IMG/VR virus record: IMGVR_UViG_3300043464_001630
Coordinates: 172,392-236,391 of that record
Length of the DNA stretch: 64,000 nucleotides
Strand: one strand, 5' to 3'
In this document: in pieces, positions 1 through 44,703 of the stretch
Layout of the letters: each line of letters starts with the position of its first letter
How positions within the stretch are numbered: position 1 is the first letter of the stretch
Program-made: the position numbers and the translations under genes
Notes under the pieces: generated by a model
Told to the model about the DNA's origin: nothing
The model's input: the letters and a program-made list of their open reading frames with translations, nothing else
Database searches by the model: none

Positions 1-243
1 TGTAAAATATGTAATAAAAATTTTGACAATCATCATCAGTTGAACGGACATAAACAAACACACAAGAAATCCAAAAAACAGATATTATATGAATTAAGCC
101 CTAAACCATGTAAAGAATGTAATGAATATATTTCGTGGAAATCTTTTAGGACAAAAACATCTATAGAATTTTGTTGTGTTTCGTGTAGAGCAAAGTTTTT
201 TTATAAAAAAGCACAAATTGTTGGAGAAAATTCCACACTCTAG
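1..243 (+). CDS. 5'-truncated zinc-finger protein (C2H2 finger plus CxxC..CCxxC finger), resembling homing-endonuclease-associated DNA-binding modules
   Basis: The frame is open from base 1. CKICNKNFDNHHQLNGHKQTH fits CxxC-x3-F-x5-L-x2-H-x3-H, followed by CKEC...FCCVSC. Confidence 0.6.
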   Translation, partial: CKICNKNFDNHHQLNGHKQTHKKSKKQILYELSPKPCKECNEYISWKSFRTKTSIEFCCVSCRAKFFYKKAQIVGENSTL

Positions 244-258
244 ACTAAATACTTATAG

Positions 259-1497
259 ATGCCATTAATCTATAAAAGTTATAAAGTAGAATTAGACCCG
301 ACCAATGTTCAAATCACTAACATGAAAAAGAACATTGGTGCGGCTAGGTTTGCTTATAACTGGGGCTTGCGTAAGAAGATAGAGGCATACGAACAAAAAA
401 ACAAAACCCCTTATTATAATGATCTTCATAAAGAATTAAATTCTATGAAGAAAAGTGAAATTACTTGGGCGTATGAATGTTCTAAGTGTTCTTTTCAAGA
501 AGCATTGGTAGATTTAGATAGAGCTTTTGATAATTTTTTTTCTAATTGTAAAAAAGGACTCAAAGGCAAGAAAGGGTTCCCCAAGTTCAAATCTAAAAGA
601 AATGATAAACAAACGTTCAGATTGTTCGGTTCGATTAGCATTAAAGAAAATGCAATCAAATTACCAAGAATCGGAAAAGTTAAATTAAAAGAAACCGATT
701 ATATTCCTAAAGATATTAGAATTAAGCAAGCCACAGTATCTAAAAAGTCTGGTAGATGGTTTGTGTCGGTTCTGACCGAAATGGAATATGACTCATTATT
801 ACAAAACAATAAAATAGTCGGTGTTGATTTAGGTATTAAAACGCTTGCTACTTGTTCAGATGGAACAACGTTTAATAATCCTAAAGCTCTCAAAAACAAT
901 TTAAACAATTTAAAATATCAACAAAGAAAACTTAGTAAAAAAGTTAAAAATAGTAAAAATTATGAAAAACAAAAATTAAAATTACAAAAGATACATTATA
1001 GAATCTCAAATATTAGAAAAGACAGCTTACATAAAGCGACTTCGAAAATTATTAGCGATAACCAAGTAATAGTTTTAGAAGACTTAAAAGTTTCTAATAT
1101 GATGAAGAATCACAAATTAGCACAAGCCACTAGTGATGTTGGATATTATGAATTTCGCAGACAGATTGAATACAAAGCTAAATGGAACAACAGACAAGTT
1201 ATATTCGTTGATCAATTCTTTCCATCTAGTAAATTATGTTCGTCTTGTGGTAATAAGAAAGAAGATTTAAAGTTGACAGATAGAACTTATAAATGCGATT
1301 GTGGTTTAGAAATGGATAGAGATCTTAATGCATCTAAAAACTTAGAACAATTTTATACTGGGAGTTTCTCAGGAATTAACGCTTGTGGAGATGAGAGGTT
1401 CATCAAGGAAACGAAAGTTTCTAAGAGGTGCTCGTCGGTGAAGCAAGAATCTAACAAAAAGACTAGAGAATATACCATTAAAAAGGTTAGACTTTAG
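259..1497 (+). CDS. tnpB: TnpB RNA-guided endonuclease (IS200/IS605/IS607 OrfB)
   Basis: N-terminal GAARFAYNWGL, FPKFKSK, RuvC motifs GVDLG / VLEDL / DRDLNAS and Zn ribbon CSSCG..CDCG. Confidence 0.95.
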   Translation: MPLIYKSYKVELDPTNVQITNMKKNIGAARFAYNWGLRKKIEAYEQKNKTPYYNDLHKELNSMKKSEITWAYECSKCSFQEALVDLDRAFDNFFSNCKKGLKGKKGFPKFKSKRNDKQTFRLFGSISIKENAIKLPRIGKVKLKETDYIPKDIRIKQATVSKKSGRWFVSVLTEMEYDSLLQNNKIVGVDLGIKTLATCSDGTTFNNPKALKNNLNNLKYQQRKLSKKVKNSKNYEKQKLKLQKIHYRISNIRKDSLHKATSKIISDNQVIVLEDLKVSNMMKNHKLAQATSDVGYYEFRRQIEYKAKWNNRQVIFVDQFFPSSKLCSSCGNKKEDLKLTDRTYKCDCGLEMDRDLNASKNLEQFYTGSFSGINACGDERFIKETKVSKRCSSVKQESNKKTREYTIKKVRL

Positions 1498-1521
1498 AAT
1501 TTTGTAAGTTTAGAAGAACGG
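1355..1521 (+). ncRNA. Probable omega/reRNA scaffold and IS607-like right end overlapping the tnpB 3' end
   Basis: ACGCTTGTGGAG...GAAGCAAGAA...GTAAGTTTAGAAGAACGG resembles TnpB right-end RNAs ending in GG. Boundaries are approximate. Confidence 0.55.
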
Positions 1522-1736
1522 AATGGAACCCCGCGATTCAAGATATCAAATCACATGAAATTGATCCTTCATGGGTGGCGGGTTTGATGTACTTGATTTT
1601 TGATCGATATCTATCTAGTGTTTCTGATTCAAAGCAACTAGAATTCTCTAAAGAAGTTTTTCGTTGGCTTTCAGTCATGAAGAAAGATGGTGGTAATTAC
1701 GTCGAGACGAAACTACCACCATTCGATGATTTCTAA
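1521..1736 (+). pseudogene. Start-less 3' portion of a gene interrupted by the TnpB element (possible exon 2)
   Basis: About 70 open codons EWNPAIQDIKSHEID...KLPPFDDF* begin at the predicted element end. An in-frame stop lies at 1488-1490. Confidence 0.5.
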
Positions 1737-4700
1737 GAACTTCTAGTACACTTCAATGATATTGTTAAACTACCAGCATTATCATTTGAAGTAACTACGA
1801 ATTGTAGATAAGAATCAGCAGGAATTGCAGTAACCCAGCCAGTCATGGTAGTTGAAGATGCCTTGGTTGTATTTACCAAAGCTGGTTGGTTTGATAATCC
1901 TGATATTACCGTATAAGTAGGATGGCTTGCAAAATTAGAAGTTAATACTTGAACAATTGAATTTGTTGGTTGGTTTGCTAGTAAAGTCCATGATAATATT
2001 TTAGTATTATATGGTATTTGAATATAACCGAAAGCATTTTCTTGTACTAAACTCGAACCTCCGTCAAATATAAAGTTTATTTGAGCAGGAATAGGAGTAA
2101 TGTTAAAAATATTAGATCCGTCACCATAGAAAGTTCCGCTAATATTTGGTGAACTTACAGAAGTATTGAATGTTGCTGTAGTTCCAGTTAATCCACCCGT
2201 TAATACACCACCAGATAATCCAAGTTTTGTAATATCTATTGATGTTAATCCGGTCACGCGAGTACCGTCACCATAAAAAATTCCACTAATGCTTGGAGCA
2301 CTGAGTGAAGTTGTGAAAATTGCAGTGGTTCCAGTTAACCCACCTGTTAATACTCCTCCAGCTAATGGTAGCTTACTACCGTCTATTCCAGATACACCAG
2401 TCAATCTGCTTCCATTTCCATAAAAAGCACCACTGAGATTAGGAGCACTAAGTGAAGTGGTAAACAATCCGACAGTTCCAGTTAATCCACCCGTTAATAC
2501 ACCACCAGATAAAGCAAGTTTGCTAATATCTATTGATGTTAATCCAGTCACGCGAGTACCGTCACCATAAAAAATTCCACTAATACTAGGAGCACTGAGT
2601 GAAGTTGTGAAAATTGCAGTGGTTCCGGTCAGACCTCCTGTTAATACTCCACCAGCTAATGGTAGTTTGCTACCATCAATTCCAGACACACTAGTCAATC
2701 CACTTCCGTTTCCATAAAAAACACCACTGAGATTAGGAGCACTGAGTGAAGTTGTAAACAATCCGACAGTTCCGGTTAATGTACCAGTTAATGCTCCACC
2801 TGATAATGGAAGTTTTGTTGGGTCTGCTGCTAATGCAATTCCTGATGTTGTTATTGATGATTTTACCCAAGTATTTGGAGCAGTACAAACATAAAAGAAA
2901 GTGGAATCGTACGCTACTTGTCCTGCTAATCCATAAGATGAACTAGTTGCGGGAGCAGATACAAACGCAACGTTCGTAGTTCTGGCACTATTAGCACCAG
3001 AAGTAGTAAGATACATGAAATTACCATCCCATTCTACAGAATTCTGAACTGGTGTGGTTAATAACGTACCTGCTTGGAATCTTAAAGGTGCTGTAGTTGT
3101 GCTTCCAACTGCTAAAGTTTGTGTGCTTGTAAATGTATTTGCGAATAATACTGCGTTTGTATTGCCTCTTGCATAAGCTTGAGTTATTGTCAAAGCCGTA
3201 GTTCCCACTACAATATCAGAAGTTCCTCCACCAGTCGAAGTATTACATGCGTAAATAAATCCATGCGAAGAAGTTCCTTTTGAAACACTGAACATTGTAC
3301 CGTTACGTACAGTTCCTTTATAAAAAGAAGGACGTTCTAATACTGCTTGTATTCCGACTCCTCCGACATTTATTACTTTCCAAGGTCCATTTTGTGCTTG
3401 ATTGGTTTGCGAAACAAATAAAATAATATCTCCTACAGATGGAGTAACACCTTCTACCACAGCTAATGCACCCGGATTGGTATATGTAAATACATCAGAT
3501 ACTACACTTCCTGCTTGATTGGTAGGGTTTCTTAATGTTACGAAATAATGAGGAACATTCGTTCCGTTAGAAACATCTCCATAAAATGTTCCGCTAATAC
3601 TTTGAGCACTAATATTATTAAATAATGCACTAGTACCAGTTACTCCACCAGTTAATGTTCCACCACTTAATGGTAATTTATTAAAATCTGTTGCTAATAT
3701 ATTTGTTAATCCAGTTCCATCACCAAAGAAAGAACCGCTAAGATTTGGTGCGCTTAATGAAGTTGTGAATAATCCTACAGTTCCTGTTAATGATCCTGTT
3801 AAGTTTCCACCTACTAATGGAAGTTTTGAGACGTCTATTCCAGAAACGCCAGTTAGTCCGCTTCCATTACCAAAGAAAGATCCACTAATACTAGCAGAAC
3901 TTAATGAAGTTGTGAATAATCCTACAGTTCCTGTTAAGGAACCAGTTAATATTCCTCCACTTAATGGGAGTTTACTGGAATCCGTTCCTACTATATTCGT
4001 TAAAAGGCTACCGTCTCCACGGAATTTATCTGCCCAAATATCATGCTTTGCACTGATTTCACCGTTAACAGTTAATTCTTTATTTGGTTCGGATTCTCTA
4101 ACACCAACTCTACCATCATTGCCAATGTGGAAAACTTCACCATAATCTTGATCATAAAACGAAGCAATATCATATGCGCCACTTGTTTGGAAAACGTATA
4201 AGGCAGGTCCAGCACCATAATTAATAACACTTAATGCACTTGTAGTGGTGAATACAGTGTTCACAAACGTAGCACTACTTAATGCGGTTAATGCCCCATT
4301 AATAATTAAATTTCCGTCTATTCTACCACCAGTTAATGCAAGTTTTGAACTATCAATTCCAATTAGATTAGTCAAACCACTTCCATCACCATAAAATGTT
4401 CCACTTAAATTTGGAGCACTTAATGATGTAGTAAATAATCCTTCAGTTCCTGTTAATGATCCAGTTAATACACCTCCTGCTAATGAAAGTTTACTTCCGT
4501 CTATTCCAGAAACACCCGTTAACCTGCTACCATCTCCATAAAATGATCCACTTAAACTAGGAGCACTTAGAGATATTGTAAATAACCCACTAGTACCAGT
4601 TAATCCATCTGTTAATGTTCCTCCTGATAAAGGTAATTTTCCATTATCAATTCCAATTAGATTAGTTAAACCACTACCATCTCCGTAAAATGATCCACTT

Positions 4701-5710
4701 AAACTAGGAGCACTTAATGAAATAGTAAACAATCCTTCGGTTCCTGTTAGTGCTCCTGTAAGTTCACCACCAGATAATTGCAATGCATCAGAATTAATAC
4801 CAACAATACCACTCAATCCACTTCCATCTCCATAAAAAGTTCCGCTTATATTAGGAGCACTCAATGAAACTGTAAACAAACCTTCGGTTCCTGTTAATGC
4901 TCCAGTTAATTCTCCACCAGATAATGGCAACTTATCATTACTCGTAATAGCAATACCACTTAAATTACTTCCGTCACCATAAAATGTTCCACTTAAACTA
5001 GGAGCACTTAATGAAATAGTAAATAATCCTTCAGTTCCAGTTAATGCTCCGGTAAGTTCACCACCAGATAATGACAACTTATCATTATCAATACCAAAAA
5101 TACCACTTAGTCCACTTCCATCTCCATAAAAAGTTCCGCTTATATTAGGAGCACTAAGAGATGTAGTGAATAATCCTTCTGTTCCTGTTAATCCTCCTGT
5201 TAGTACACCACCAGCTAGTGGTAACTTATCAATATCGATACCAGAAATTCCAGACAATTTACTTCCGTCTCCGTAAAATGTTCCGCTTAAACTAGGAGCA
5301 CTTAATGAAACTGTAAATAATCCTTCGGTTCCTGTTAATGCTCCAGTTAGTTCACCGCCAGATAATGGCAATTTTGTGGTATCAGTACCGAATACTCCGG
5401 TTAAACCACTGCCATCACCATAAAAAGTTCCACTTAAATTCGGAGCACTTAATGATATGGTAAATAATCCTTCGGTTCCTGTCAATGCTCCAGTTAATTC
5501 TCCACCAGATAATGGTAATTTTGTAATATCCGTTCCAAATACTTGAGTTAATTGGCTACCAATTCCGATAAATTCATAAGCTGTTACATTTTGCGTAAAC
5601 AATCCTTCGGTAGCTGACAAAAGATTATGAGAATAAACATTATCCCAATACGAATCTTTACCAGATGTAGTTCCTGAAATATTTTCGGAAGGTGCTAAAA
5701 AGCGAGACAT
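1733..5710 (-). CDS. Long tail-fibre-like protein with 16 copies of a 49-aa repeat
   Basis: Repeat KLPLSGGxLTGxLTGTxGLFTxSLSAPxLSGTFYGDGSGLT; fibre domains GDIILFVSQTNQAQNGPW and GQVAYDSTFFYVC. Start placed at ATG 5710 by the TAAATA box. Confidence 0.8.
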   Translation of the reverse strand: MSRFLAPSENISGTTSGKDSYWDNVYSHNLLSATEGLFTQNVTAYEFIGIGSQLTQVFGTDITKLPLSGGELTGALTGTEGLFTISLSAPNLSGTFYGDGSGLTGVFGTDTTKLPLSGGELTGALTGTEGLFTVSLSAPSLSGTFYGDGSKLSGISGIDIDKLPLAGGVLTGGLTGTEGLFTTSLSAPNISGTFYGDGSGLSGIFGIDNDKLSLSGGELTGALTGTEGLFTISLSAPSLSGTFYGDGSNLSGIAITSNDKLPLSGGELTGALTGTEGLFTVSLSAPNISGTFYGDGSGLSGIVGINSDALQLSGGELTGALTGTEGLFTISLSAPSLSGSFYGDGSGLTNLIGIDNGKLPLSGGTLTDGLTGTSGLFTISLSAPSLSGSFYGDGSRLTGVSGIDGSKLSLAGGVLTGSLTGTEGLFTTSLSAPNLSGTFYGDGSGLTNLIGIDSSKLALTGGRIDGNLIINGALTALSSATFVNTVFTTTSALSVINYGAGPALYVFQTSGAYDIASFYDQDYGEVFHIGNDGRVGVRESEPNKELTVNGEISAKHDIWADKFRGDGSLLTNIVGTDSSKLPLSGGILTGSLTGTVGLFTTSLSSASISGSFFGNGSGLTGVSGIDVSKLPLVGGNLTGSLTGTVGLFTTSLSAPNLSGSFFGDGTGLTNILATDFNKLPLSGGTLTGGVTGTSALFNNISAQSISGTFYGDVSNGTNVPHYFVTLRNPTNQAGSVVSDVFTYTNPGALAVVEGVTPSVGDIILFVSQTNQAQNGPWKVINVGGVGIQAVLERPSFYKGTVRNGTMFSVSKGTSSHGFIYACNTSTGGGTSDIVVGTTALTITQAYARGNTNAVLFANTFTSTQTLAVGSTTTAPLRFQAGTLLTTPVQNSVEWDGNFMYLTTSGANSARTTNVAFVSAPATSSSYGLAGQVAYDSTFFYVCTAPNTWVKSSITTSGIALAADPTKLPLSGGALTGTLTGTVGLFTTSLSAPNLSGVFYGNGSGLTSVSGIDGSKLPLAGGVLTGGLTGTTAIFTTSLSAPSISGIFYGDGTRVTGLTSIDISKLALSGGVLTGGLTGTVGLFTTSLSAPNLSGAFYGNGSRLTGVSGIDGSKLPLAGGVLTGGLTGTTAIFTTSLSAPSISGIFYGDGTRVTGLTSIDITKLGLSGGVLTGGLTGTTATFNTSVSSPNISGTFYGDGSNIFNITPIPAQINFIFDGGSSLVQENAFGYIQIPYNTKILSWTLLANQPTNSIVQVLTSNFASHPTYTVISGLSNQPALVNTTKASSTTMTGWVTAIPADSYLQFVVTSNDNAGSLTISLKCTRSS
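2110..5525 (-). repeat. 147-bp coding tandem repeats in three blocks (8+3+5), including a recent 294-bp duplication
   Basis: GTCACGCGAGTACCGTCACCATAAAAAATTCCACTAAT occurs at 2253 and 2547. Confidence 0.9.
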
Positions 5711-5766
5711 AAAATTATTTATCAAATCTTAAATGATTAACTCATTTGAATTTGTGATTTTCGGAT

Positions 5767-6441
5767 TTATCCCACAACTATAATTTTATATGCAGTCAGA
5801 CCGGGTACTTCTGAAAATTCTACTGTAATTTCATTAAAATTAGTATATGTAACTAATGGATAAACAACTTCAAAAGTATTTGTATTAATAACAGTACTCA
5901 CTACGTCTTGAACGTCAAGATCATGATTGATGGTATACACAGTGTCGGTATCATTTCCAAATGCAGAAACAAATTTAGTAACATTACGATCTCCGAAAAT
6001 TCTTCCAGTTGCTGAAATATCACCAATAACTGTTAATTTTTTATTTGGTTCTTTGGTTCCAATCCCCACAAATCCGGGTCTGGAAGAATTTCCATCTACC
6101 CAAAGTGCGATATTAGAATCATCATAAAAAGCGGCAATTGCTTCTTCTCCGATCTGTACTCCCACCACTGCGGGACCAGTCCCCATATTGACCACACTCA
6201 ATGCACTTGATGTGGTGAACGTGGTATTAACAAAATTAGAACTCCCCGCAACAGTTAATGTTCCTGTAATATAAGTATCTCCAGAAACATATAGTGTTTT
6301 AGTAGGATCTGGATTCATCGTTGAACTCAAGACACCCAAGGCTAAATTATTAGCCATCAAATTATCAGTTACATATACATCTCCAGAAGCCGTTAGAGAA
6401 TTATAAACTACTACATCTTGAAGAATTCTTAAATTTGACAT
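5767..6441 (-). CDS. Fibre-associated virion protein
   Basis: Shares FVNTxFTTxSALSV and GIGTKEPNKKLTV modules with the 1330-aa fibre, and a C-terminal H(D/N)L domain with the next two ORFs. Confidence 0.65.
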   Translation of the reverse strand: MSNLRILQDVVVYNSLTASGDVYVTDNLMANNLALGVLSSTMNPDPTKTLYVSGDTYITGTLTVAGSSNFVNTTFTTSSALSVVNMGTGPAVVGVQIGEEAIAAFYDDSNIALWVDGNSSRPGFVGIGTKEPNKKLTVIGDISATGRIFGDRNVTKFVSAFGNDTDTVYTINHDLDVQDVVSTVINTNTFEVVYPLVTYTNFNEITVEFSEVPGLTAYKIIVVG

Positions 6442-6467
6442 ATATCTTATTATTTAATGCTTTTAGC

Positions 6468-8741: not shown

Positions 8742-11700
8742 TTAGGTCGCTGACCAGTTGTCGATGTTTATCCATCCTGTTGTTCCGTCACAATCTACAT
8801 AGAATTCAAGAACACCAGTATCAGTTACTGCTGGAGAAACACCAGAAAGTTTCAAGAAAATTTCCGATGTAGTATCTAATTGATCCACCACAATGTCTGA
8901 TGCTATTCCCATTGTTGCGTTACGTTTCAATATTAAACGAGGAGATGTGCCGTTATAAGCAACACCATTATTAGCTACTGAGGATTTTCTCATATAAACA
9001 CTAATTCTAGTGGATTGTCCTGCACTTAGTGCTACGAATTTACTTCCACTGCGAAGTTTTAATGTAGTACTTTGTGGAGTTAAACGTTCAGAAGGTGCAT
9101 TAGCTGCGCTGATGTTTCCAGTTAAGGTTGAATCAACAGCACGGTTACCAGCAGCAAGATAAGTTACGTTATAACCACTAGCATTATTCATGTTGGTGAA
9201 TGCAAATCCAGTAGTTTTAAATACTTCTGGTTGATAATTAGAATTGGTTATACCAGTCCCAACTGGAAGATTGCTAACGTTTGTATTGCTGATTAGATAA
9301 GAACCTTCTACTACATTTCTAGATGCAGTAACATTGAAGCTAGACCTTCCACTAACAGTAGAGTTGATTACATTAAATTGTGAGAATTTAGTGCTGTCTA
9401 AACTAATTCCAGATCCACTTAGTCCTCCAACAATAGCATCTTTAATTAATATTGGATAATAGTTGGTTCCAGAAAGAATGCCAATACCAGCAGATGTACT
9501 TGCAACATTATTCATTAATGCTGTGATACCATCAATAGTGGTAGGTGCATTTCCTATGGAAGTTCTCATTCCATAGATGCCATTATTATTAAGTTGTAAT
9601 GAAGAGAGATTGCCAGATATGCAATAACCTTCAAATCCACCGCTTAGATTGTTATTAGCAACTAAACGATTGATGTTAAGAGTAACTGGAGTTAAATGGT
9701 TGATAGCATTACCAGATAAACGGAAACCTAAAGTAGCGTTATTAGATGCAGTAATATTACTGAAAGTAGTGTTACTTACTAAACCGGGTACTGAACCATC
9801 AATGTAGATGCCTTCTCCAATATTATGTATAGAGACGATATTAGTTAGATTTCCACATTGGCTAGCAGATAATACCAAACCGCTGTTACCGTTTCTGTAG
9901 TTAACAACGCCGGTGATATCTCCGTTTATATTTGAATTTGCAATAAGAGTTCCATTTGATCTTGCACCTATCACAGTATTGTCTGACATTGTAATTCCAG
10001 AAGAACTTACACTTGCAAAGAATAATCCAGAGCTAGCAGAACTTAGTAAAGTATTACCAGTAACAGTCAATGCAGTCGCAGATACTGAACTTAATGATAC
10101 ACCATTACCACCAGATCTAAAGAATACGTTATCTCTTAATGTTACACTTCCGATAGTAGGCTTACTACTTATGGTTGTAATATGTGTAGTACCACCAAAT
10201 CCATCAGAATTGAATGAATTACCACTTAATGTTACGAACCCATTTTGATTTACACCTACTACTAATCCTGTTTTGTTTACAGATGCAATACCAAAATTAG
10301 TGAATTGAGTATTAGTAATATTAACTTTAGCAGCATCTACAGCACGTACTGTACCGCGACTTGAAGATGAATTTCCACGAATGCTGACATTTCTGCTCAA
10401 GTTAGATACAGTTGGTACATTTCCTAAAGATGTGACTGAAGGATGGTTAAATGCTGCACTTGCTGTGGTTCTGAATGTACTGTCACCATCAAATGATGAT
10501 AGAGTCAATACATCAAAAGAATTAGCTTGGAAGGTGTTTGGCGTGAATACTACAGAATCACCTACTGACCAATTAGTAGAAACGGTATCTACAACGGTAA
10601 ATGTTCTTGCTGAAGATAAAGAATCTGCGGTTAGATATGTATATGGTTTTTTGTATGCACCATATACATTCATATTACCGCCATTATGTGCATCAATTTG
10701 TGAATTTAAGAGTGATATATTATGTTGTACTGAGCTAGGTATTGGATTAGTTGACGTACCAATTTCTAACGTACCATCAGAAGTGATTTGTAATCCTTGA
10801 GATCCAGCTACATTAATTGTTGTATTAGTTTGAGGGAATGTCAATTTTCCGCCATTATGTATGTAAATATTACCTTCTTCGATTGCAGATGCTGTCAATA
10901 TACGTGCTTCGGAAGTTAATCCATTCAATGAACCACCTATATGTAAGTTATGTAGATTTTTAATAGTGTAAGTATTATCATAAGGATGCTTATAAAGAAA
11001 TGGAGTATAACTCAATACATTTAATGGAGATGCAGGAACAGTAAAGTCGGAAGTATATAATGCCGTATTTTTTACGATTCTAAAGTTTGAAATATTACCA
11101 TTTAATCCTTCTAAGAATCCAGTATGTGGAGAAGCTCCGATATATAAATCTCTTAATGTAGAAGTAGTATTTATTGTTGTTGTTAATTTTAGAGATCCGT
11201 TTAGATATAAACGTAGACTTCCAGAAATTCTACATAAAGCTAAATGATGCCATTGATTTAATGGTACAGCTCCCCAGTTACCTACAAATGCACTATTATT
11301 ATACATATCTCCCGAACCTACATTGGTTATACGACACAATAACCCATTATCGTTTCTATAATCACCATAAGAAAAGATAGTATAATAACCACCAGACGCT
11401 GTTAATCTAAACCAACATTCTACAGTAAAATCATTTGAATCTGTATTTAAATTATTTGATGGAACGGTGATATAATTAGAATTAGAGAAATATATACTAC
11501 TATCAGTACCAATACCAAATGGTGATGCTGAAGAAAGAGTTGGTGATCCAGTTTTAGTAAGCGTACCATATTCTATAAATGTGGATGGATTTTTAGTCGT
11601 GGTAGTAATTAATCCTTTATTTACATTGCCATAACTACCCAATAAGAATGGATTACTATAAGTAGTAGTAAATCTAGTATCATATGCATCTTTCATCAAA

Positions 11701-27881: not shown

Positions 27882-27955
27882 TTCTAATATTTAGCTTTAC
27901 AAAGTATTTTTATTATGCTAATATAAAAAATATACTATCTATTAAATAGAAATTA

Positions 27956-35007: not shown

Positions 35008-35235
35008 ATGAGCTTGGATAAACGAATCGCCAAAGGAGAGGAAAAGCGTAAACCTTATTTCGATTCGCGGCGATTCGATTATTCCTGTAGAAACCACGGC
35101 ACTTGTCCTTGGTGCTACGGAAATAGAATGCATAAAAACAAAAAACAAGAAATTTCTTGCGAACAACAAGAAAAAGAAGTAACATCAGAAGATCATGACG
35201 AATCGAATTCAAATGGCACGCAAGAAGAAAACTAA
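35008..35235 (+). CDS. Small Cys/His phage protein
   Basis: D.SCRNHG.C.WC..NR.H motif. Confidence 0.65.
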   Translation: MSLDKRIAKGEEKRKPYFDSRRFDYSCRNHGTCPWCYGNRMHKNKKQEISCEQQEKEVTSEDHDESNSNGTQEEN

Positions 35236-36454
35236 TTCTTCAGAAGAACCTAAAGTTCTTCCATCACAAGCAGTGATTGAAGATAAACTAAGAGCAGCAA
35301 GAATCGGTCTTCTCTTGCGTCAGCCTTTCTTTGGTAGCATGGCTACGCATCTTAATATTGTCAGAGATGATAATATGAACACTGCTGCTACTGATGGTAG
35401 GAATTTCTTTTATAACCTAGAATTCATTTCTAGTCTGAGCGTTAAAGAAACTGAATTTCTTTTTGGTCATGAAGTTCTGCATAATGTATTTGAGCATCAT
35501 ATTAGAAAAGATTTTCCTGATAGTGTTACTGAAATTAACGAAGACGGAACTTTCACTAAAAAGTGTCGTCATCACACACTCTGGAACATTGCATGTGATT
35601 ATGCAGTAAATGCGATTCTTATTGAATCTGGTATTGGTAGTAGGATTGAAAACACTCTTTTCGATGAAAAGTATAAAGGTAAGTGTTCTGAAGAAATCTA
35701 TGATGATCTCTTAAAGAATGCAGATAAGATTGATATCGATGATCTATCAGACATGTTGTTGGATGAACATCTTTCTGATCTAGAAAAGAAAGGCAAGAAG
35801 CTCACAGAAGCAGAAAAGCAACAGATCCGAAACGAAATCAAAGAGAATCTCTTATCATCTGCCAAGAGTGCAGGAAACGTACCATCTGGTGTAGATCGCT
35901 TAATTAAGAATCTAACAGCTCCTACTCTTTCTTGGAAAGAACTGTTAAAGATGGATATTCAATCACAAATCAAATACGATTATACTTTCTATACACCAAA
36001 TAAGAAAGGAATGCAAAACGGTGTTGTATTGCCCGGTATGCGTAGAGATGAAGCATTGGATATTTGTGTAGCTATTGATACATCTGGTAGTATTGATGAA
36101 AATACACTGAATGTTTTTCTTAGTGAAATTAATGGCATCATGGAACAATACGATGATTATACTATTCGTGTTTGGTCATTTGATGCCGAAGTTCATAACG
36201 AACAAGTATACAGAAGTGATGAAGGAGCAGATATCACAGATTATGTACCGGCAGGTGGAGGTGGTACTTTATTCGAAGCAAATTGGGATTACATGAAGAA
36301 GAACAACATCAGCCCGAAAGTATTCATCATGTTTACCGATATGTATCCATGCGGAGGATGGGGTGATCCAGACTATTGCGATCATGTGATATTTGTCGGA
36401 TACAAATCAAACGGTAAAGTTGCACCATTTGGAACAACAATTACGATTGATTAA
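35195..36454 (+). CDS. DUF2201-type metallopeptidase-like plus vWA domain protein (MoxR partner)
   Basis: TAATDG, HEVLH, WNIACD, MIDAS motif IDTSGS, GGGGT and FTD. Confidence 0.88.
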   Translation: MTNRIQMARKKKTNSSEEPKVLPSQAVIEDKLRAARIGLLLRQPFFGSMATHLNIVRDDNMNTAATDGRNFFYNLEFISSLSVKETEFLFGHEVLHNVFEHHIRKDFPDSVTEINEDGTFTKKCRHHTLWNIACDYAVNAILIESGIGSRIENTLFDEKYKGKCSEEIYDDLLKNADKIDIDDLSDMLLDEHLSDLEKKGKKLTEAEKQQIRNEIKENLLSSAKSAGNVPSGVDRLIKNLTAPTLSWKELLKMDIQSQIKYDYTFYTPNKKGMQNGVVLPGMRRDEALDICVAIDTSGSIDENTLNVFLSEINGIMEQYDDYTIRVWSFDAEVHNEQVYRSDEGADITDYVPAGGGGTLFEANWDYMKKNNISPKVFIMFTDMYPCGGWGDPDYCDHVIFVGYKSNGKVAPFGTTITID

Positions 36455-37791: not shown

Positions 37792-38145
37792 ATGAAGAAA
37801 CTGATAATCCTAACACTACTAGCCCTCACCAGTTGCACCACGGTGCGGCGTGACGATCATTCGTACACGTACATCCACAACTTCAATTCTTCTTCTGAAG
37901 AAAAGCCAGCAACACAACTCAAACGTCTTCGTGATGACGAACCTAATGGTGATTATCCATTTTATGACAAAGGTTTGCAAAGTTCTGCGGTAATTGATAA
38001 TAACGAACAGAAATCGAATAATTCTAATATTACTCACAATCATTATTATCCACAACGGGCAGCGGCAACTTATAATCCACCTCCTGCTTATTCTGGATTC
38101 GCTCCTTCTGCTAGGCGTTATCTACTTCATGGAGAAGTGCGTTAA
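37792..38145 (+). CDS. Putative lipoprotein
   Basis: MKKLIILTLLALTSC lipobox. Confidence 0.6.
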   Translation: MKKLIILTLLALTSCTTVRRDDHSYTYIHNFNSSSEEKPATQLKRLRDDEPNGDYPFYDKGLQSSAVIDNNEQKSNNSNITHNHYYPQRAAATYNPPPAYSGFAPSARRYLLHGEVR

Positions 38146-38147
38146 CC

Positions 38148-39398
38148 ATGATTAAACATAATATAAACAAATTGAAGAAATTCTCATCGGTCGGTGAATT
38201 ATTGCATGGATTTGGAACTGAAAGTTCTTCGGATTCGAACAAGAAAACAGACAATAAAATGAAAAAAACCAATTATAAAAAATTTCTAAAAATCATAGAA
38301 TCTGATAAAGATATTATTGTTAATGATGGCTTGATTAAAGAAATTGATTTTCCAGACCAGTTGGAATCTTCTTCTCAAGTGGCATGGCTATTTTGTAATA
38401 AGTTTCATAAGAAAATTCCAAATTCTTATTATATAGATTCTGGAAAATATAACACTGGATTGTTGGATTTCTTCAGGACCAATGGAAAGTTAGAATATAA
38501 GAAGATCTATAGCATGGATGATTATCCAGAAATTAATTATATTTTCTCTTATCAAGAATGTTTTTATACGATTAGTGTAAATTTCATTACACAAGACGGA
38601 GAAGCTTCGTTGTATAATTTTTCTTGTTATCATCCAATTCATATTGATCCTAATATAGAACAGTTTTCTAAATTTCTAGTAGTTAAGAAAGAAAATCCTA
38701 AAATTGGGATTATCAAAACGACTAGAATGGGGCCTATGGTGAGTTGGATTGAACACAAGAACGAACAGAAATTCGAAGAAGATAATTACAACGACGATTT
38801 TCCCGTATTCTTCAAAGATCTGACTGATAAGCTCTCAAGTAAAGAAAAGACTGGATTGTACTTATTTTACGGAGAAGCAGGTACTGGTAAATCTTCTGCT
38901 ATTCGTCATTTGATTAATTCGGTGGATCGTCCTGTGGTTTTCATTCCACCACAGATGATTAACTGTTTATCTAATCCAGAATTTACGGATCTTGTGACAA
39001 ACAGTCTGAAGGGATCTATTCTGGTTATTGAAGATGCAGAAAAGGCTCTTATGAAGCGAGAATCACAAGACGGATTCTTTAACTCTGAGTTGGTATCTTC
39101 TATACTGAATCTGACCGATGGCTTGTATGCGGATCTATCGCAAACTGCAATTATTGCGACATACAATTGTGATCGTAATTTAATTGATCCCGCACTACTA
39201 AGAAAAGGAAGACTTCGTTCTGAGTATCATTTCCAAAAGTTGTCTGAGGAAAGAAGCCAAAAATTGATGGACAAACAAGGTCATGATGTTAGTGTAGAAG
39301 AACCCATGACATTGGCTGATATTTTCAATTACGAAAAACAATATTCAAATGATGACAAATCTAAAAAGCCGAAAAGAGTAGTAGGCTTCGGAAAATAA
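38148..39398 (+). CDS. AAA+ ATPase (BCS1-like clade)
   Basis: GEAGTGKS, LVIEDAE, LNLTDG and IDPALLRKGR. Confidence 0.85.
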   Translation: MIKHNINKLKKFSSVGELLHGFGTESSSDSNKKTDNKMKKTNYKKFLKIIESDKDIIVNDGLIKEIDFPDQLESSSQVAWLFCNKFHKKIPNSYYIDSGKYNTGLLDFFRTNGKLEYKKIYSMDDYPEINYIFSYQECFYTISVNFITQDGEASLYNFSCYHPIHIDPNIEQFSKFLVVKKENPKIGIIKTTRMGPMVSWIEHKNEQKFEEDNYNDDFPVFFKDLTDKLSSKEKTGLYLFYGEAGTGKSSAIRHLINSVDRPVVFIPPQMINCLSNPEFTDLVTNSLKGSILVIEDAEKALMKRESQDGFFNSELVSSILNLTDGLYADLSQTAIIATYNCDRNLIDPALLRKGRLRSEYHFQKLSEERSQKLMDKQGHDVSVEEPMTLADIFNYEKQYSNDDKSKKPKRVVGFGK

Positions 39399-39402
39399 TC
39401 TT

Positions 39403-40506
39403 ATGACACTTCACGAAATCGGTTTACCAGATCCTGAACAATTTCATATCAAAGAAATCGGAGATAAGATATTGATTCATAGAAAAGAAGCAGGAGTTAA
39501 ATGGAATGATAAAAACAAATATTTCAGAAGCTCTGTATGGGAAAAAGAGTCTGGTAAATTAATTTCGGCAGGATTTCGAGCATTTGTTAATTATGGGGAG
39601 CAGCCAGACTTCGAGCCATTAGAAGCGAACAATAGGATAACAGCGGTCACTAAAACGGACGGAAGTTTGTTATGCGTTTCGAGCTACAAAGGTGAATTGA
39701 TTGTTCGAACTAGAGGAACTGTAGATGCTACTAAATTATCTAATGGACACGAGATAGAGTTCTTAAAAAACAAGTATCCACGGGTTTTTAATAATCACTA
39801 TATAAACAACGGACGATATACTCTATTGTTTGAGTGGACAACTCCTACTAATAGAATTGTTTTAGCTGAAACAACAGAACCTTGTTTATGGTTAATTGGA
39901 ATGGTCCTACATGATTCAAAAGATGAATTTTATAAATACGTACAGCAAGAACATCTAAATACGGTCGCATGGTTTTTAGAAGTTGAACGACCGAAAACAT
40001 ATAGTATCACTGTTTCGGATAATATCGAAAAACTAAAAAAAGATATCGAACCTTTGGTTGATATCGAAGGAGTTGTTGTGTATGATGAGTCTGGTCAGAT
40101 TTTAAAGAAGATCAAGACCTTACGCTATTTAGAGTTGCATAAAGTATTCACTGGTGTAAAAACTGTGGATCACTTGTTTGATATTTTTGTTGAGTATGGT
40201 TGTACTTATAGAGAAAACTTCGAAGCATTACTAGCTACTAATTTTGATTGGGAATTAGTGACTACATTGAAACCTTTGATTGACGAATTGTATCAGAAGT
40301 GGCAAGTCATAACAGATAAACAATTTTCTATTGGAATGTTTATTGGTAATGTCGATATCTCAGGATTGAGCAGAAAAGAAAAAGCACAACAAATTCTGAA
40401 TCATTTCCCAGATTGTTCCGGTATTGCATTTGCGATGATGGATGGAAAAAAATTAACTCCGCATAAACTTTGGAAAACATTTCATGAAAAATCCGCCACC
40501 AGTTAA
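39403..40506 (+). CDS. T4 Rnl1-like RNA ligase
   Basis: F.N.GE, KTDGSL, RTRG, TLLFE...P.NRIV, EGVV and KIK. Confidence 0.82.
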   Translation: MTLHEIGLPDPEQFHIKEIGDKILIHRKEAGVKWNDKNKYFRSSVWEKESGKLISAGFRAFVNYGEQPDFEPLEANNRITAVTKTDGSLLCVSSYKGELIVRTRGTVDATKLSNGHEIEFLKNKYPRVFNNHYINNGRYTLLFEWTTPTNRIVLAETTEPCLWLIGMVLHDSKDEFYKYVQQEHLNTVAWFLEVERPKTYSITVSDNIEKLKKDIEPLVDIEGVVVYDESGQILKKIKTLRYLELHKVFTGVKTVDHLFDIFVEYGCTYRENFEALLATNFDWELVTTLKPLIDELYQKWQVITDKQFSIGMFIGNVDISGLSRKEKAQQILNHFPDCSGIAFAMMDGKKLTPHKLWKTFHEKSATS

Positions 40507-40849
40507 ATCACTCATTCCATATGATATGGATAGAGGTGGTCAAGTTATCGAAAAACTTGATTTATCGTTTGTAAATCAAAACAGAAAGAATAAACTTAAT
40601 AATTATGCCACAGCAAAGATGGAAGATATCAAAAGGCAGTACGATGAAACTATTGCATTATGGCAATGGAATAATTACGTCGATTCCTTCAATATTGGAT
40701 TTGATCCCGTAGTAGGAAAAGTGTATTTTCTTTACGAAGGCGCTACGAAATTTGTTTCTATTCTAAGTCCTGAAGAATTTAAACGAGAATGTGTAGGTGC
40801 TACAAAATTAACAAGTGACGGTTACTGGGAGGAAGTTAAATGGAAGTAA
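40484..40849 (+). CDS. DUF2452-like protein
   Basis: F.PVVGKVY.LY....SILSPEE..L.SD..W. Confidence 0.55.
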   Translation: MKNPPPVKSLIPYDMDRGGQVIEKLDLSFVNQNRKNKLNNYATAKMEDIKRQYDETIALWQWNNYVDSFNIGFDPVVGKVYFLYEGATKFVSILSPEEFKRECVGATKLTSDGYWEEVKWK

Positions 40850-41460
40850 TGCAAAAATTAACGGACGAAGTTTACAATAAACTATTTGTAACGTCCGACA
40901 CCCACTTTAACCACAATAAAGAGTTTGTCTATAAAACTCGTGGTTATGAAGATCCCACACAAATGACAGAGGATATGATAAACACTATCAATTCCACTGT
41001 TGGAGAAGATGGCATTCTTTTACATTTAGGTGATTTTTGTCTAAACACTACTAGAGAACAGTATCACGATATTCTTAGTAAACTAAAAGTTAAAGAAATC
41101 TGGATGCTCTGGGGTAATCATAATAATCCAATTCAAAGATCATACGGAGGAATTAGAGAACAAGTGTGTTCTTATACCAAAAACGTCTTTATTCGTTATT
41201 TGGGTCATTACTTTACTTTCAGGAACAAGAAAAACATGTTTGTGTGTTTTCATTTCCCGATCCATAGTTTTGATGGGGTAAATCACGGTTCGATGCACCT
41301 TTGTGGTCATTCGCATGGAAACTACGAAATCTCCCGTCCAGAAAATCATGAACAAAAAATCCTAGATTGCGGCTGGGACATCCACAAAAAGCCGTTGACA
41401 ATGAAGGAAATCGAAACTATCATGAGCCACAAAAATTTAAAGAAACTGCATCATGATTGA
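40840..41460 (+). CDS. Calcineurin-like metallophosphoesterase
   Basis: TSDTHF.H, LGDF, GNH, HFP and GHSH motifs. Confidence 0.88.
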   Translation: MEVMQKLTDEVYNKLFVTSDTHFNHNKEFVYKTRGYEDPTQMTEDMINTINSTVGEDGILLHLGDFCLNTTREQYHDILSKLKVKEIWMLWGNHNNPIQRSYGGIREQVCSYTKNVFIRYLGHYFTFRNKKNMFVCFHFPIHSFDGVNHGSMHLCGHSHGNYEISRPENHEQKILDCGWDIHKKPLTMKEIETIMSHKNLKKLHHD

Positions 41461-41650
41461 AAACAAAGAAGAACAGAAGATTCAGATGACGGAGGATATT
41501 GAATATTGGCTACTTAAAGCAAAAGGCTCAATCGAGCAAGCCATAGAAGAAAAAGATCCTATGATTTGTTTGTCGCACATTCGTCAAGCTGAAATTGCCA
41601 TTCGTTCACATGTAAATTATATTCAAGTTAAAGAAACCAACCAACAATAA
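41453..41650 (+). CDS. Hypothetical protein
   Basis: Operon spacing. Confidence 0.55.
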   Translation: MIENKEEQKIQMTEDIEYWLLKAKGSIEQAIEEKDPMICLSHIRQAEIAIRSHVNYIQVKETNQQ

Positions 41651-41653
41651 ATT

Positions 41654-41875
41654 ATGCAAAACCTATTTACTACCTATGATCTCGAAGTGATGGAAAAATT
41701 CGAAATCATTTTCGATAGAGCACCAAACGAAAAAACTGCAAAACAAAACGCAGTTACTTATTATAAGTCACTGATGGATGAAAACGAAGAAGCCGACATT
41801 GACGAAATCATTGATTTGGCCGAATCTTACGGATATGATTTTGATGATTTCGAATCACTCATAGACGCTGAGTAA
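41654..41875 (+). CDS. Small acidic protein
   Basis: Very D/E-rich C-terminus. Confidence 0.6.
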   Translation: MQNLFTTYDLEVMEKFEIIFDRAPNEKTAKQNAVTYYKSLMDENEEADIDEIIDLAESYGYDFDDFESLIDAE

Positions 41876-41877
41876 TT

Positions 41878-42153
41878 ATGATTGAACATAAGCCATTGAA
41901 AGAATCTTTTTCTAAATACGGATTTGATTACAAGATGATCAAACGTACAAAGAAAAAAGCCATTTTTGAACAATCAAAAAGAAACAGAGTATTCAGTTAT
42001 GAAGTGATTACTGTTTCTAAGCATAACGGATTCACTTTGGGAGATGTATATATTGAGCCATCTGAAACATATCCATCTACATCTGAATGGGGCGCGAAAG
42101 GGTTTACTTATAAAACACTAGAAGAAGCAGAACGGAAATATAAGGAACTCTAA
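41878..42153 (+). CDS. Hypothetical phage protein
   Basis: E.YPS..EWG..G(F/W)T motif. Confidence 0.6.
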   Translation: MIEHKPLKESFSKYGFDYKMIKRTKKKAIFEQSKRNRVFSYEVITVSKHNGFTLGDVYIEPSETYPSTSEWGAKGFTYKTLEEAERKYKEL

Positions 42154-42161
42154 ATATTTAG

Positions 42162-42362
42162 ATGTTCCGAATTGACCCTATCGATAAACATGGAAATGTA
42201 GATGTAGAATTCTTTGCTTGTGATGAGTATGTTTCTGAGAGCGATGTCTTGAGAAGATATCTGAAATTAGAAGGATTTGATGAAACTGACAAAGTTTTCT
42301 TTATTGATTTTAGAAACAGAAAATGGCAGGTTACTCCATGTAAAAAACAAAAGAAAAAATGA
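42162..42362 (+). CDS. Hypothetical late protein
   Basis: TAAATA at 42151-42156. Confidence 0.5.
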   Translation: MFRIDPIDKHGNVDVEFFACDEYVSESDVLRRYLKLEGFDETDKVFFIDFRNRKWQVTPCKKQKKK

Positions 42363-42588
42363 AAAATTTAGAACTAAACATTGGAAAATTAACAATAGTG
42401 ATTGGAGTGATTTTGGATTTGTTGGTTTATGGAATTGTGTACTATTTTGGATACAAGCACGGCAAACACGATTTCGAAACGATTCAAACAAATATGAAAA
42501 TAGAAATTGAAAAAATAGCACAGAATTGATAAATACTTATATGCACTAATGGTTCTTCGCTACCATAAACGACGATTGGTCACGTGCT

Positions 42589-42631
42589 AACCCGCTTTCT
42601 GTCACTACTGAGGAGAGCGGGTTTCTTTTTT
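42589..42631 (+). terminator. Intrinsic terminator closing a short late transcript
   Basis: AACCCGCTTTCT/GGAGAGCGGGTT followed by a T-run. Confidence 0.75.
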
Positions 42632-42958
42632 CCTAAAAAGATAAATAAACACATGGTATTACTATGTTCTTTTTTCGCTTTACGTTATTTTGGTGTTGTC
42701 ACTAGTACTGTTTCGTGGTATGAAATACTCATCTGTGTAGCGATTATTAAAATACTAGAAAAGATACTAGGCGATGAGAAAACTGACTAAAAACTTCAAC
42801 AACGATTGGCTAAACTATAGATTCAGCACAAACATAAGAAAATCCGAAGATTCTCAGTTTTCTAAAATTATTTGGGTTTTCGTCGGCATAGCCCATTTGA
42901 TGGGAGTTGTAGCTCTTTTGAAAACTTAAATTATCAACAGACATGCTAAATAATTAGC

Positions 42959-43276
42959 GTGTCCAGTATTAAGAAATTAACTAAAAAAGAAAGTCTCGAA
43001 TTGTTTGAGCGTGTGATAAACATGATCAAAAAACAAAAACGAGGCTTTTTTTATTTTAAAAAGTTAAAAGGAGTACATGGATATTGCGAATGGGAAGAAG
43101 GAATTATATTAGATTACAGAAAAGATCTAATACCCACAATAATACACGAATGTATACATTACCTAGAACCAGAATGGTCTGAAGCACAAGTAATGTATTC
43201 AGAGAGTAGAGTAGTCAATTCCATAACAGAAGATGATGTAATAAAATTGTTATTATATTTCGTCAAGAAAATCTAA
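42959..43276 (+). CDS. Small HExxH (zincin-like) protein
   Basis: TIIHECIH; TAAATA box upstream. Confidence 0.55.
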   Translation: MSSIKKLTKKESLELFERVINMIKKQKRGFFYFKKLKGVHGYCEWEEGIILDYRKDLIPTIIHECIHYLEPEWSEAQVMYSESRVVNSITEDDVIKLLLYFVKKI

Positions 43277-43395
43277 CGAAATTTCACACATAATATAGAA
43301 ATATACACTATTTTATAGAAAAATAAAGAAAATAAAAATATTTTTCAAAAACATCAAGAAAATCACATCATGTAGACTAAATAATCTATAGATAC

Positions 43396-44703
43396 ATGAT
43401 TAGTATTAAATGCAAAATTAAAAACCAAATTGATGTTGCTGATTATATCCGTCAGTTTAACAACGTCAAGCGTTTTGCATATAATCGTTTCTTAGAAAAG
43501 AAAAGCTTATCAGAAGTTTATCATTTATCTTGCAAAACTTTAAATAATTGCGAGTTGCTAGATGCTTCCTTTAGAGAAGCTGCTGTTCTGAAAGCTAAAG
43601 AGATTTACGATACAAGTGGGGATAATAAAGTAATCTTCGGTGGTAGATCAAATTTCAATAAACTCAAATATAAAAAAGAATCAGCCAAACCTTTACGAAG
43701 AAATGTTTCTTTTTATTCACAAGGTAGAGCAAATTTCAAAGGTAATCGTAAATTTAATTTTGACTTAGAAAACAACAAAGTAGTTTTTAAACCAGAAAGA
43801 AAAGTTAAGATAGAAATAAAATTCGAAGAAGTTTCTAAAAATCAAAAGAAACTTTTAAAGAAAGCACAATATCTGTCACAAAGAAAAGAACTTTCAATTT
43901 CTGTTCAAGTTTCGGAAACTCATATAATATTTGCTATAGATGAATCTATTTTACAGAATCAAAATTACAAACCAATCAAAAATAGAATTTTAGCTTTAGA
44001 TTCTAATCCAGAAAATATTGGTTTGAGTATTATAGATTGGATTGACCCAGATACTAAAACTATTATTCATAAAGAAGTTATTGATCTGAAAGGACTTAGA
44101 GATCTTAGTACGAACAAAAAACATCATGAAATCCTTAGCGTTTCTCAAAGAATAGCCAAGTTAGCTAAACATTACCAATGCGAAATCGTATGTTTCGAAA
44201 AGCTCAATATTAAGCCTAAGGATAATGGAAAAGGAAAACTTTATAATCGTTTAGTAAACAATAATTGGAATCGTATCAAGTTCTTCCAGAACCTTACTAA
44301 ATGGTGTAATATCTTTGGAATAGCAACCCAAGAAGTTGCTTCCGAATTTTCAAGTTTTATTGGTCAATTAACAAATGAACATGATGTGGACATGATAGCT
44401 GCTTCGATAGAAATCTCACGAAGAGGTTTCCTATTCTACAATCATTATGTTGCTAAAAGAATTTCGTCAGTAAATAACGAAAAGGTGAACATAGTTTACC
44501 CTGAGTTTAATGTTAGTTCTCTACCTACTCGTTGGAAGAAAATGGTACAGGATGATGATGCATTAGGTTCATGGAAGAAACTATACTATCATCTAAAAAA
44601 ATCAGAAACGAGTTATAGGTTTTCTCTGAAGGATTGGAAACAGTCCAAAGAGTTTTTAAGGCACAAGTCTAGGAAAAGTAATGTTTTTCTATATTTCGGC
44701 TAA
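43396..44703 (+). CDS. tnpB: TnpB-related RuvC nuclease lacking the C-terminal Zn ribbon
   Basis: RFAYNR, VIFGG, GNRKF; RuvC-I ALDSNP, RuvC-II FEKL, SSFIG and RuvC-III DMIAASIEISRRG. Confidence 0.82.
   Translation: MISIKCKIKNQIDVADYIRQFNNVKRFAYNRFLEKKSLSEVYHLSCKTLNNCELLDASFREAAVLKAKEIYDTSGDNKVIFGGRSNFNKLKYKKESAKPLRRNVSFYSQGRANFKGNRKFNFDLENNKVVFKPERKVKIEIKFEEVSKNQKKLLKKAQYLSQRKELSISVQVSETHIIFAIDESILQNQNYKPIKNRILALDSNPENIGLSIIDWIDPDTKTIIHKEVIDLKGLRDLSTNKKHHEILSVSQRIAKLAKHYQCEIVCFEKLNIKPKDNGKGKLYNRLVNNNWNRIKFFQNLTKWCNIFGIATQEVASEFSSFIGQLTNEHDVDMIAASIEISRRGFLFYNHYVAKRISSVNNEKVNIVYPEFNVSSLPTRWKKMVQDDDALGSWKKLYYHLKKSETSYRFSLKDWKQSKEFLRHKSRKSNVFLYFG

Follow-up and report, generated by a model that had tools for sequence, protein, structure and literature searches.

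Why do two distantly related tnpB genes in one phage genome carry the same short sequence directly in front of their start codons? The genes, P0001 and P0002, lie in a stretch of 64,000 nucleotides (the window below, bases 172392-236391) of the 236,391-bp IMG/VR virus record IMGVR_UViG_3300043464_001630, whose G+C content is 33.7% and whose completeness CheckV estimates at 100%. The genome encodes myovirus tail, baseplate and sheath genes, a family-B DNA polymerase, ribonucleotide reductase (RNR), several helicases and a gp55-like late sigma factor (phrog_234, E = 5.6e-21), and we treat its source as a T4-like jumbo phage; no near-identical phage records were found. The sigma factor is 500 amino acids (aa) long (genome 103528-105030; L070:3528-5030) and has an intein splicing domain at residues 94-230. 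An earlier note on this DNA proposed that both RNA-guided nucleases are wired into late transcription in the manner of T4 homing endonucleases and have been domesticated by the phage. Judged from the sequences and from analogy with T4, we lean toward a late-promoter cassette borne by the mobile elements themselves as the explanation of the shared sequence, with its identity as a promoter, its start sites, its late timing and a role in homing as the predicted parts of that explanation.

A shared sequence upstream of two tnpB genes

The 11-mer TAGACTAAATA is present exactly at window positions 241 and 43373, 7 and 12 nt 5' of the respective tnpB start codons, and is followed in both places by TATAGA, as the earlier note had reported. 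Motif copy 1 (241-261, + strand) reads TAGACTAAATACTTATAGATG, that is TAGACTAAATA ct TATAGATG, with TAAATA at 246-251, AAAAT at 227-231, the ATG at 259 and a predicted late start near 257; motif copy 2 (43373-43398, + strand) reads TAGACTAAATAATCTATAGATACATG, that is TAGACTAAATA atc TATAGA tac ATG, with TAAATA at 43378-43383, AAAAT at 43359-43363, the ATG at 43396 and a predicted late start at 43389/43390. The 11-mer occurs exactly at three places in the 236,391-bp genome, each on the coding strand and just 5' of a mobile-element gene; the third, which had gone unrecorded, is at genome 10158, 5 nt 5' of the GTG start of an IS607-type serine recombinase. A fourth site, AAGACTAAATACTTACATG (genome 2110), precedes a 258-aa endonuclease-like gene, beside which (genome 2125) no tRNA was called.

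Could such an identity simply be due to chance in an AT-rich genome? A plain count of the 11-mer, with up to one mismatch, is not above chance in the window, local alignment of the two upstream regions finds no significant similarity beyond the 11-mer (p 0.14-0.18; only the fixed-position AAAAT box stands out), and an IMG/VR scan with a 16-nt pattern gives at least 115 matches, about the chance level. On the other hand, the five bases 5' of TAAATA are TAGAC in both window genes and in the genome 10158 copy, and the chance of one 5-mer being common to three given TAAATA sites is about 1.6e-5; moreover, the motif is kept within families across 70-92% protein identity, and its link to selfish genes is replicated in other genomes (below). 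We regard coincidence as extremely improbable.

The TAAATA core by itself is a general gene-start signal in this phage, a point absent from the earlier note. Among 326 genes, defined by a simple heuristic based on open reading frames (ORFs) with ATG starts only, no hexamer is more enriched than TAAATA in the 40 nt 5' of start codons (110 against 10 expected). It lies within 45 nt of the ATG in 100 genes, on both strands, with a spacer of 5 nt in 56 of these, 6 nt in 14 and 7 nt in 11, and genome-wide about 90 genes (about 28%) have it, mostly 5 nt from the ATG. The flanks of ordinary sites have low information content (consensus TAAATA-A-T-n-n-T-ATG). Most TAAATA genes have no visible Shine-Dalgarno sequence, and some genes carry ordinary GGAG sites; TAAATA-type starts without a Shine-Dalgarno sequence can be seen at window 5716-5730, 27887-27900 and 44707-44720. 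The annotated genes with the box include the tail sheath, tail and collar fibres (four fibres), the head-tail adaptor and virion proteins, and the sheath stabiliser gene has it 10 nt from its ATG; the DNA polymerase, four helicases, the RNR large subunit, SbcC, a glycosyltransferase and the sigma factor do not have it. The T4 late promoter TATAAATA spans -13 to -6, and its version in Aeromonas phage Aeh1 is CTAAATA (PMC1524935). On this evidence we think it quite probable that TAAATA is a late promoter of the T4 type, which would act as the -10-like box of this phage group and be read by the gp55-like sigma factor. By analogy with T4, transcription would start 6 nt after the box, and since a 5-nt spacer after a box whose last base is at -6 makes the A of the ATG position +1, most late mRNAs would be leaderless, and the tnpB leaders would be about 2 and 7 nt long.

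Is TAAATA-N5-ATG perhaps a generic translation-initiation signal, of a non-Shine-Dalgarno or leaderless kind, with no late wiring of the tnpB genes at all? Several of the observations tell against a promoter and are what such a signal would give: the rigid 5-nt spacing (56%) is equally compatible with a translation-start signal, information upstream of ordinary sites is low, and the box stands on both strands at about 28% of genes, most of them without a visible Shine-Dalgarno sequence. In addition, several structural genes inside operons also lack TAAATA, one RNR gene has it at 8 nt, and the bias of the box toward structural genes and toward operon heads is modest (Fisher p 0.04 in each case, with a class annotation that spans about 50 genes). 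However, in the TnpB families the box lies at 7, 12, 14 and 25 nt from the start, a variation too large for ribosome positioning that favours a promoter over a pure translation signal; none of the large replication genes tested has TAAATA, which is common at structural genes and at the heads of operons; and the box matches T4-family late promoters in a genome that has a gp55-like sigma factor and some genes with GGAG. The pure translation signal thus seems to us an unlikely alternative, though one of some weight, and the late-promoter reading is kept below. The pattern is also found beyond this phage, as the four phages that host a third TnpB family (G006-G009) have TAAATA-N5-ATG 24-45 times each, against 0-4 times for a control pattern.

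What sets the tnpB genes apart is the sequence in front of the box. AGAC stands directly 5' of TAAATA at none of 89 ordinary sites and at all four of the selfish genes. Five other phage genomes have seven AGACTAAATA sites, which head four TnpB genes, one GIY-YIG/NUMOD homing endonuclease (phrog_314), one Cys-rich protein with a weak restriction-endonuclease match and one ordinary acidic protein; across the six phage genomes the AGAC version heads four TnpB families, an IS607 TnpA, a GIY-YIG homing endonuclease and a putative endonuclease. Alignment of nine independent AGAC sites places an AAAAT box exactly 10 nt 5' of the AGAC, and at least four of its five positions match at 8 of the 9 AGAC sites but at only 12 of the 89 ordinary sites (p 6e-6). 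The specificity of AAAAT and AGAC makes the shared sequence a putative promoter subclass, AAAAT-N10-AGACTAAATA, which in these phages is nearly restricted to selfish nuclease and recombinase genes. The two boxes could set promoter strength or timing, could recruit an extra factor, or could mark a cassette passed between elements.

The motif is retained by homologues, as alignment of their upstream regions (the check proposed by the earlier note) makes clear: it is present in six of six members of the P0001 family, which have the form (T/C)AGACTAAATA(c/a)tTATAGATG, in five of seven members of the P0002 family, and in the third TnpB family, whose protein is 34% identical to P0001. At 78% protein identity, ACTAAATAATCTATAGATA is the longest left-end block common to the P0002 subfamilies. 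The proposal of late wiring like that of T4 homing endonucleases therefore stands as a prediction, based on the T4-type box, the gp55-like sigma factor and the GIY-YIG gene, and the last of these, a homing endonuclease of a related phage behind the same AGAC version, makes the analogy apt. The cassette is not on every nuclease gene, since an HNH-endonuclease-like gene in the window (35195-36454, 419 aa, phrog_1314) has neither TAAATA nor AGAC upstream. Perfect inverted repeats of 8-9 bp enclose the ATG of two nuclease-like genes behind AGACTAAATA, at genome 2110-2901 (L065) and at L298:1501-1560; their arms are CTTACATGG...CCATGTAAG and TATACATG...CATGTATA.

Two different mobile units

P0001 (259-1497, + strand) is a 412-aa IS607-type TnpB by Pfam and PHROG comparison, with HTH_OrfB_IS605 (PF12323), OrfB_IS605 (PF01385) and Cas12f1-like_TNB (PF07282) domains above cut-off and a match to phrog_506 at E = 6e-122. 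Its RuvC residues D190, E274 and D355 are invariant in 15 homologues, and homologues at 49-61% identity sit after serine-recombinase genes. Directly upstream is an 83-aa ORF with a C2H2 zinc finger and a zinc ribbon (its zf-C2H2 Pfam matches are weak), which starts at genome 172383, 8 nt before the window, and whose 3' 243 nt occupy positions 1-243 (+ strand); its stop codon TAG is the first three bases of motif copy 1. This ORF is directly 5' of tnpB in six independent contigs. The C2H2 and zinc-ribbon protein (81-88 aa) is always 5' of P0001-type tnpB genes, in the place usually taken by tnpA (window 1-243, L076, L079, L080, L081 and L083), and the 13 clusters found for it are all labelled hypothetical. 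Small sigma-70-like genes (regions 2 and 4) lie within a few genes of the zinc-finger-TnpB units in related contigs L076, L078, L079 and L080.

The P0001 unit extends from 10 nt before the window to position 1521, in the order zinc-finger ORF, motif, tnpB and 24-nt tail. Its right end (1498-1521, + strand) reads ...GTAAGTTTAGAAGAACGG with the terminal GG at 1520-1521; the right end is identical in six copies, whose flanks diverge immediately after the GG, a GG right end is found in five of six unit copies, and full left ends follow (A/G)GGG. Homology with a sister phage, G001, resumes at 1521, and a metagenome contig also breaks at 1521. The two-gene unit stands at different loci in six contigs, with TnpB identities of 75-92%, and the left end, about 110 nt long in full copies, includes a TAAATA-N5-ATG of its own for the zinc-finger gene. 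At the window locus the insertion interrupts a small conserved phage gene of ~93 aa, of which the first five codons remain, about 48 nt are missing and the rest continues from 1522 (3' remnant at 1522-1735, + strand); in G001, which lacks P0001 and has the empty site, the gene is intact and about 93 aa long. In G001 a TnpB of a third type is fused to the zinc-finger gene and CAGACTAAATA, so the zinc-finger-plus-promoter module is combined with different nucleases. An omega-RNA-like structure at 1338-1511 (+ strand; RNAalifold of six family members, 48 pairs, 10 with compensatory double changes) overlaps the 3' end of tnpB and stops 10 nt before the GG terminus.

P0002 (43396-44703, + strand) is a divergent 435-aa protein of the TnpB/Cas12f fold related to the ISCaje4 TnpB; tblastn puts its identity to the TnpB of ISCaje4 from Campylobacter phage CP220 at 32% and that to Lak megaphage ORFs at 36%. 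It has no match in local Pfam and PHROG scans or in a PDB sequence search, and the record carries a precomputed PF27229 SSO2105_N tag for it. The AlphaFold2 (AF2) model (predicted local distance difference test, pLDDT, 83.9) has Cas12f, Cas12k, Fanzor2 and the ISDra2/ISFba1 TnpBs as its top Foldseek matches (E 2e-8 to 3e-5). Across 29 homologues, residues D202 and D332 never vary and the conservation of E268 is at least 90%; no zinc-ribbon (TNB) insert was found in the protein, and there is no CxxC pair between E268 and D332. A metagenome scan and a profile scan for P0002 relatives added few loci. Direct sequence homology between P0001 and P0002 was sought and rejected (BLASTP found nothing and hhalign gave 8.7%), and the two are linked by fold alone; the earlier description of two distantly related TnpBs with intact RuvC triads is thus correct.

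The ends of the P0002 unit are precise. The inserted block is 43274-44704 plus one copy of TC: the left end (122 nt, 43274-43395, + strand) is 3' of a TC junction dinucleotide at 43272-43273, and the right end (44700-44720, + strand) contains CTAAC, TC at 44705-44706 and the intact TAAATA-N5-ATG of the next gene (ORF 44718-44966). G001 is empty at this site, where it reads ...AAAAAACTC|TAAATAATTATATGG, and six unit copies with different flanks all have the form flank-TC-T(A/G)A...CTAAC-TC-flank. The insertion is seamless, as the upstream ORF stops at the first TAA of the element in place of its own stop codon, and the TAAATA-N5-ATG of the next gene is left intact. G001 (242,607 bp) has a 77% identical P0002 orthologue about 860 bp away in the opposite orientation, and contig G002 has at least three copies of the unit that are 96.6% identical over 1,467 bp. 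In most contigs the unit is antisense to its neighbours and so needs a promoter of its own. An omega-RNA-like structure (44574-44701, + strand; RNAalifold of eight family members, 42 pairs, 8 with compensatory changes) lies inside the 3' end of P0002.

The motif is 96 nt (P0002 unit) and about 250 nt (P0001 unit) inside these boundaries, so it travels with the units, and the promoter would be element-borne and not added by the phage. That the 11-mer is a transposon end was ruled out, since the empty sites and the comparison of multiple copies put the boundaries 96 and ~250 nt upstream of the motif. An IStron or group I intron was likewise rejected: Rfam gave no match at gathering score across the window, nor any with E up to 1 around P0001, and the 5' part of that unit is the zinc-finger gene. 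Curated omega-RNA families, RAGATH-18 included, did not score in either Rfam search.

Where, then, is the recombinase? No serine-recombinase tnpA was found in either window unit; the statement of the earlier note that neither gene has an adjacent transposase is right as far as recombinases go, but it had missed the conserved 83-aa zinc-finger gene directly upstream of P0001. The relatives of P0002 are paired with recombinases (a resolvase-like ORF in ISCaje4; in G002, a full tnpA-tnpB element whose tnpA has TAAATA 8 nt upstream) and those of P0001 follow them (above), so both units derive from IS607-lineage elements and are without the recombinase. A recombinase acting in trans may mobilise them; the one TnpA, and only resolvase, of the genome is outside the window at 10174-10776, in the element with the third motif copy, whose tnpB (genome 10760-12355) encodes a TnpB of 531 aa (528 from the first ATG). 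That element (genome 10001-12760; L058 1500-4260) lies between two copies of the 5' ~100 nt of a PP-loop (TilS-like) gene, of which the upstream, truncated one is 84% identical to G001 and the downstream, intact one only 72% over that stretch; it looks like an acquisition together with donor flank by co-conversion.

The earlier note had taken the late wiring to suggest domestication for homing or inter-phage competition. Could the two TnpBs be fixed anti-phage weapons or regulators that are no longer mobile? They have no adjacent recombinase, the window copy of P0001 has no left end and is joined to the beginning of a host gene, a 92%-identical P0001 copy is found in the same gene order on another contig, and the identical left junction occurs in a metagenome from another study. 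Nevertheless, the units are discrete and mobile: their ends are precisely conserved, they stand at many loci and in at least three 96.6%-identical copies on one contig, P0001 disrupts a conserved gene and is absent from G001, and in G001 P0002 is about 860 bp off in the opposite orientation. These defined ends, empty sites, other loci and multiple copies contradict domestication, which we consider improbable.

The TATAGA half, possible start-codon hairpins and a proposed homing route

TATAGA is invariant in the P0001 family, as TATAGATG, and is found at five of seven P0002-family loci. In the third TnpB family (13 loci, L221-L233) the upstream sequence is (A/T)AGACTAAATAataa(T/C)ATAGAa; this family has no ATG there, but TAAATA is followed at a distance of exactly 5 nt by an in-frame ATA, about 20 nt 5' of the codons for the TnpB N-terminus. 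TATAGA may in this family be a leaderless start position plus a Glu codon, with the ATA as a candidate leaderless AUA start.

In P0001, TATAGAT is also the 5' arm of a possible hairpin (253-275, + strand; UUAUAGAU / AUCUAUAA, minimum free energy -8.4 kcal/mol, z -2.1) that encloses the AUG, with the partner ATCTATA in codons 4-6; both arms are invariant, so there is no covariation, and an RNA starting at 257 is predicted to be unstructured. In a possible hairpin at P0002 (43367-43400, + strand; AUCAUGU / ACAUGAU, z -2.7) the AUG pairs with an ATCATGT that lies 5' of the promoter; the single compensatory change among five sequences is not above shuffles. The two hairpins rank only 40th and 20th among 93 late genes and so are not distinctive. 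Both would form only in read-through RNA, as the hairpins of T4 I-TevI, segB and mobE do (PMC2988022).

An alternative is that AGAC...TATAGA is a protein-binding site and no part of the promoter, for TnpA, for the zinc-finger protein, or as an autorepressor's operator that overlaps the promoter. I-TevI does bind an operator that overlaps its own late promoter (PMC2988022), the 122-nt P0002 left end contains TATAGA three times and the right end has one inverted copy, the P0001 unit has TCTAAA/TTTAGA repeats at its two ends, and the reading frame of the zinc-finger protein stops just at the motif. But the motif is 96-250 nt inside the elements and away from their junctions, the right-end repeats double as omega-RNA stem arms, and no zinc-finger gene accompanies the P0002 units, the GIY-YIG gene or the IS607 element; G001 keeps the motif although it has no resolvase anywhere, and the TATAGA of the third TnpB family is an in-frame ATA-GAA. 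A binding site as the reason for the shared sequence is therefore doubtful in our estimate. Near the left terminus of the P0002 unit TATAGA is present twice (43291-43322), and the inverted copy near its right terminus is at 44686-44691; the P0001 family has as analogues TCTAAA repeats at the left end and TTTAGA at the right end. These terminal repeats may be recombinase sites, or just omega-RNA stem arms.

How might an element-borne late promoter serve these units? The cassette stands inside two different IS607-lineage units, one composed of a zinc-finger gene and a TnpB and ending in GG, the other of a TnpB alone and bounded by TC. A single late transcript would supply both the TnpB and the precursor of its 3' omega-RNA. 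Late timing would offer many replicated genomes and active recombination, which favour copying, and would avoid early damage; the nuclease would cut element-free alleles in co-infecting or sister genomes, and recombination would copy the unit in. A recent review lists such "non-restorative homing" for coinfected phages (PMC13565253). Several facts count against parts of this scheme: AGAC is only 4 nt long; some AGAC sites are kin by descent (two zinc-finger-linked TnpBs, and orthologues in sister phages); the 24 sequencing runs that contain the phage are all DNA, from lake-water or freshwater metagenomes, and none is RNA; the window copy of P0001, without its left end, cannot be a complete transposon; and the guide-adjacent flanks differ from the empty sites of the sister phage at several positions, so cutting of G001 is not predicted. 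We nevertheless put forward, as a tentative possibility, the broader view that in freshwater T4-like phages the dedicated subclass AAAAT-N10-AGACTAAATA marks and co-regulates selfish nuclease genes, and that recombinase-less TnpB units, one with a C2H2 zinc-finger partner, pass from one co-infecting phage to another as RNA-guided homing endonucleases whose late mRNAs are leaderless or nearly so.

Comparison with known systems

T4-family late promoters are read by gp55 together with gp33 and gp45. The signal described here shares with them the TAAATA core (often CTAAATA), a gp55-like gene and placement at virion genes, but differs in that the box is mostly 5 nt from the ATG, which would make the late mRNAs leaderless. 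T4 late promoters need no AGAC, nor an AAAAT box 10 nt further upstream, whereas the subclass here has both. A candidate new partner protein (the C2H2 zinc finger) and sequence-level evidence for leaderless late mRNAs in a T4-like phage group are among the things that the locus offers.

Homing endonucleases thrive in phages, where rates of co-infection and recombination are high. The homing endonuclease genes of T4 and its relatives (I-TevI, I-TevII, I-TevIII, segB and Aeh1 mobE) have a late promoter and a hairpin that blocks translation of longer early transcripts. The tnpB genes resemble them as selfish nuclease genes with a predicted late promoter of their own immediately upstream and with possible start-codon hairpins that would be shortened in the late transcripts, and a GIY-YIG seg-like gene has the same promoter subclass. 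They differ in encoding RNA-guided TnpBs within IS607-lineage units, their hairpins are not statistically distinctive, and there is no Shine-Dalgarno sequence to sequester. Unrelated TnpB elements appear to be adapted to the phage's own late transcription, sharing a promoter variant with classical homing endonucleases.

Elements of the IS607 family consist of a serine recombinase, TnpA, and a TnpB, have GG ends and make no duplications, and the TnpB-omega-RNA complex restores the element by homing. Like them, P0001 has relatives that follow serine recombinases, and its unit ends in GG by G-rich flanks (AGGG| in full copies); the relatives of P0002 (ISCaje4 and the G002 element) pair with a resolvase-like TnpA, with an identical dinucleotide at both ends and 3' omega-RNA-like structures. 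Unlike them, the window units have no tnpA, with the zinc-finger gene in its place in the P0001 unit, and the P0002 unit uses TC and not GG and has a TnpB without a zinc ribbon.

Cas12 descends from TnpB, whose role in nature is now seen as the homing of transposons; the units described here would be a concrete case, open to testing, of "non-restorative" homing by TnpB from one phage genome to another. Phages are reported to carry TnpB and compact type V nucleases (Cas12j, Cas-lambda) frequently, and like those the proteins here are small RuvC nucleases in large phage genomes. They offer compact nucleases, one type without a zinc ribbon, with defined ends and predicted guide positions, and they differ from the phage type V nucleases in having no CRISPR array and in being encoded by discrete transposon-like units with a phage-specific promoter.

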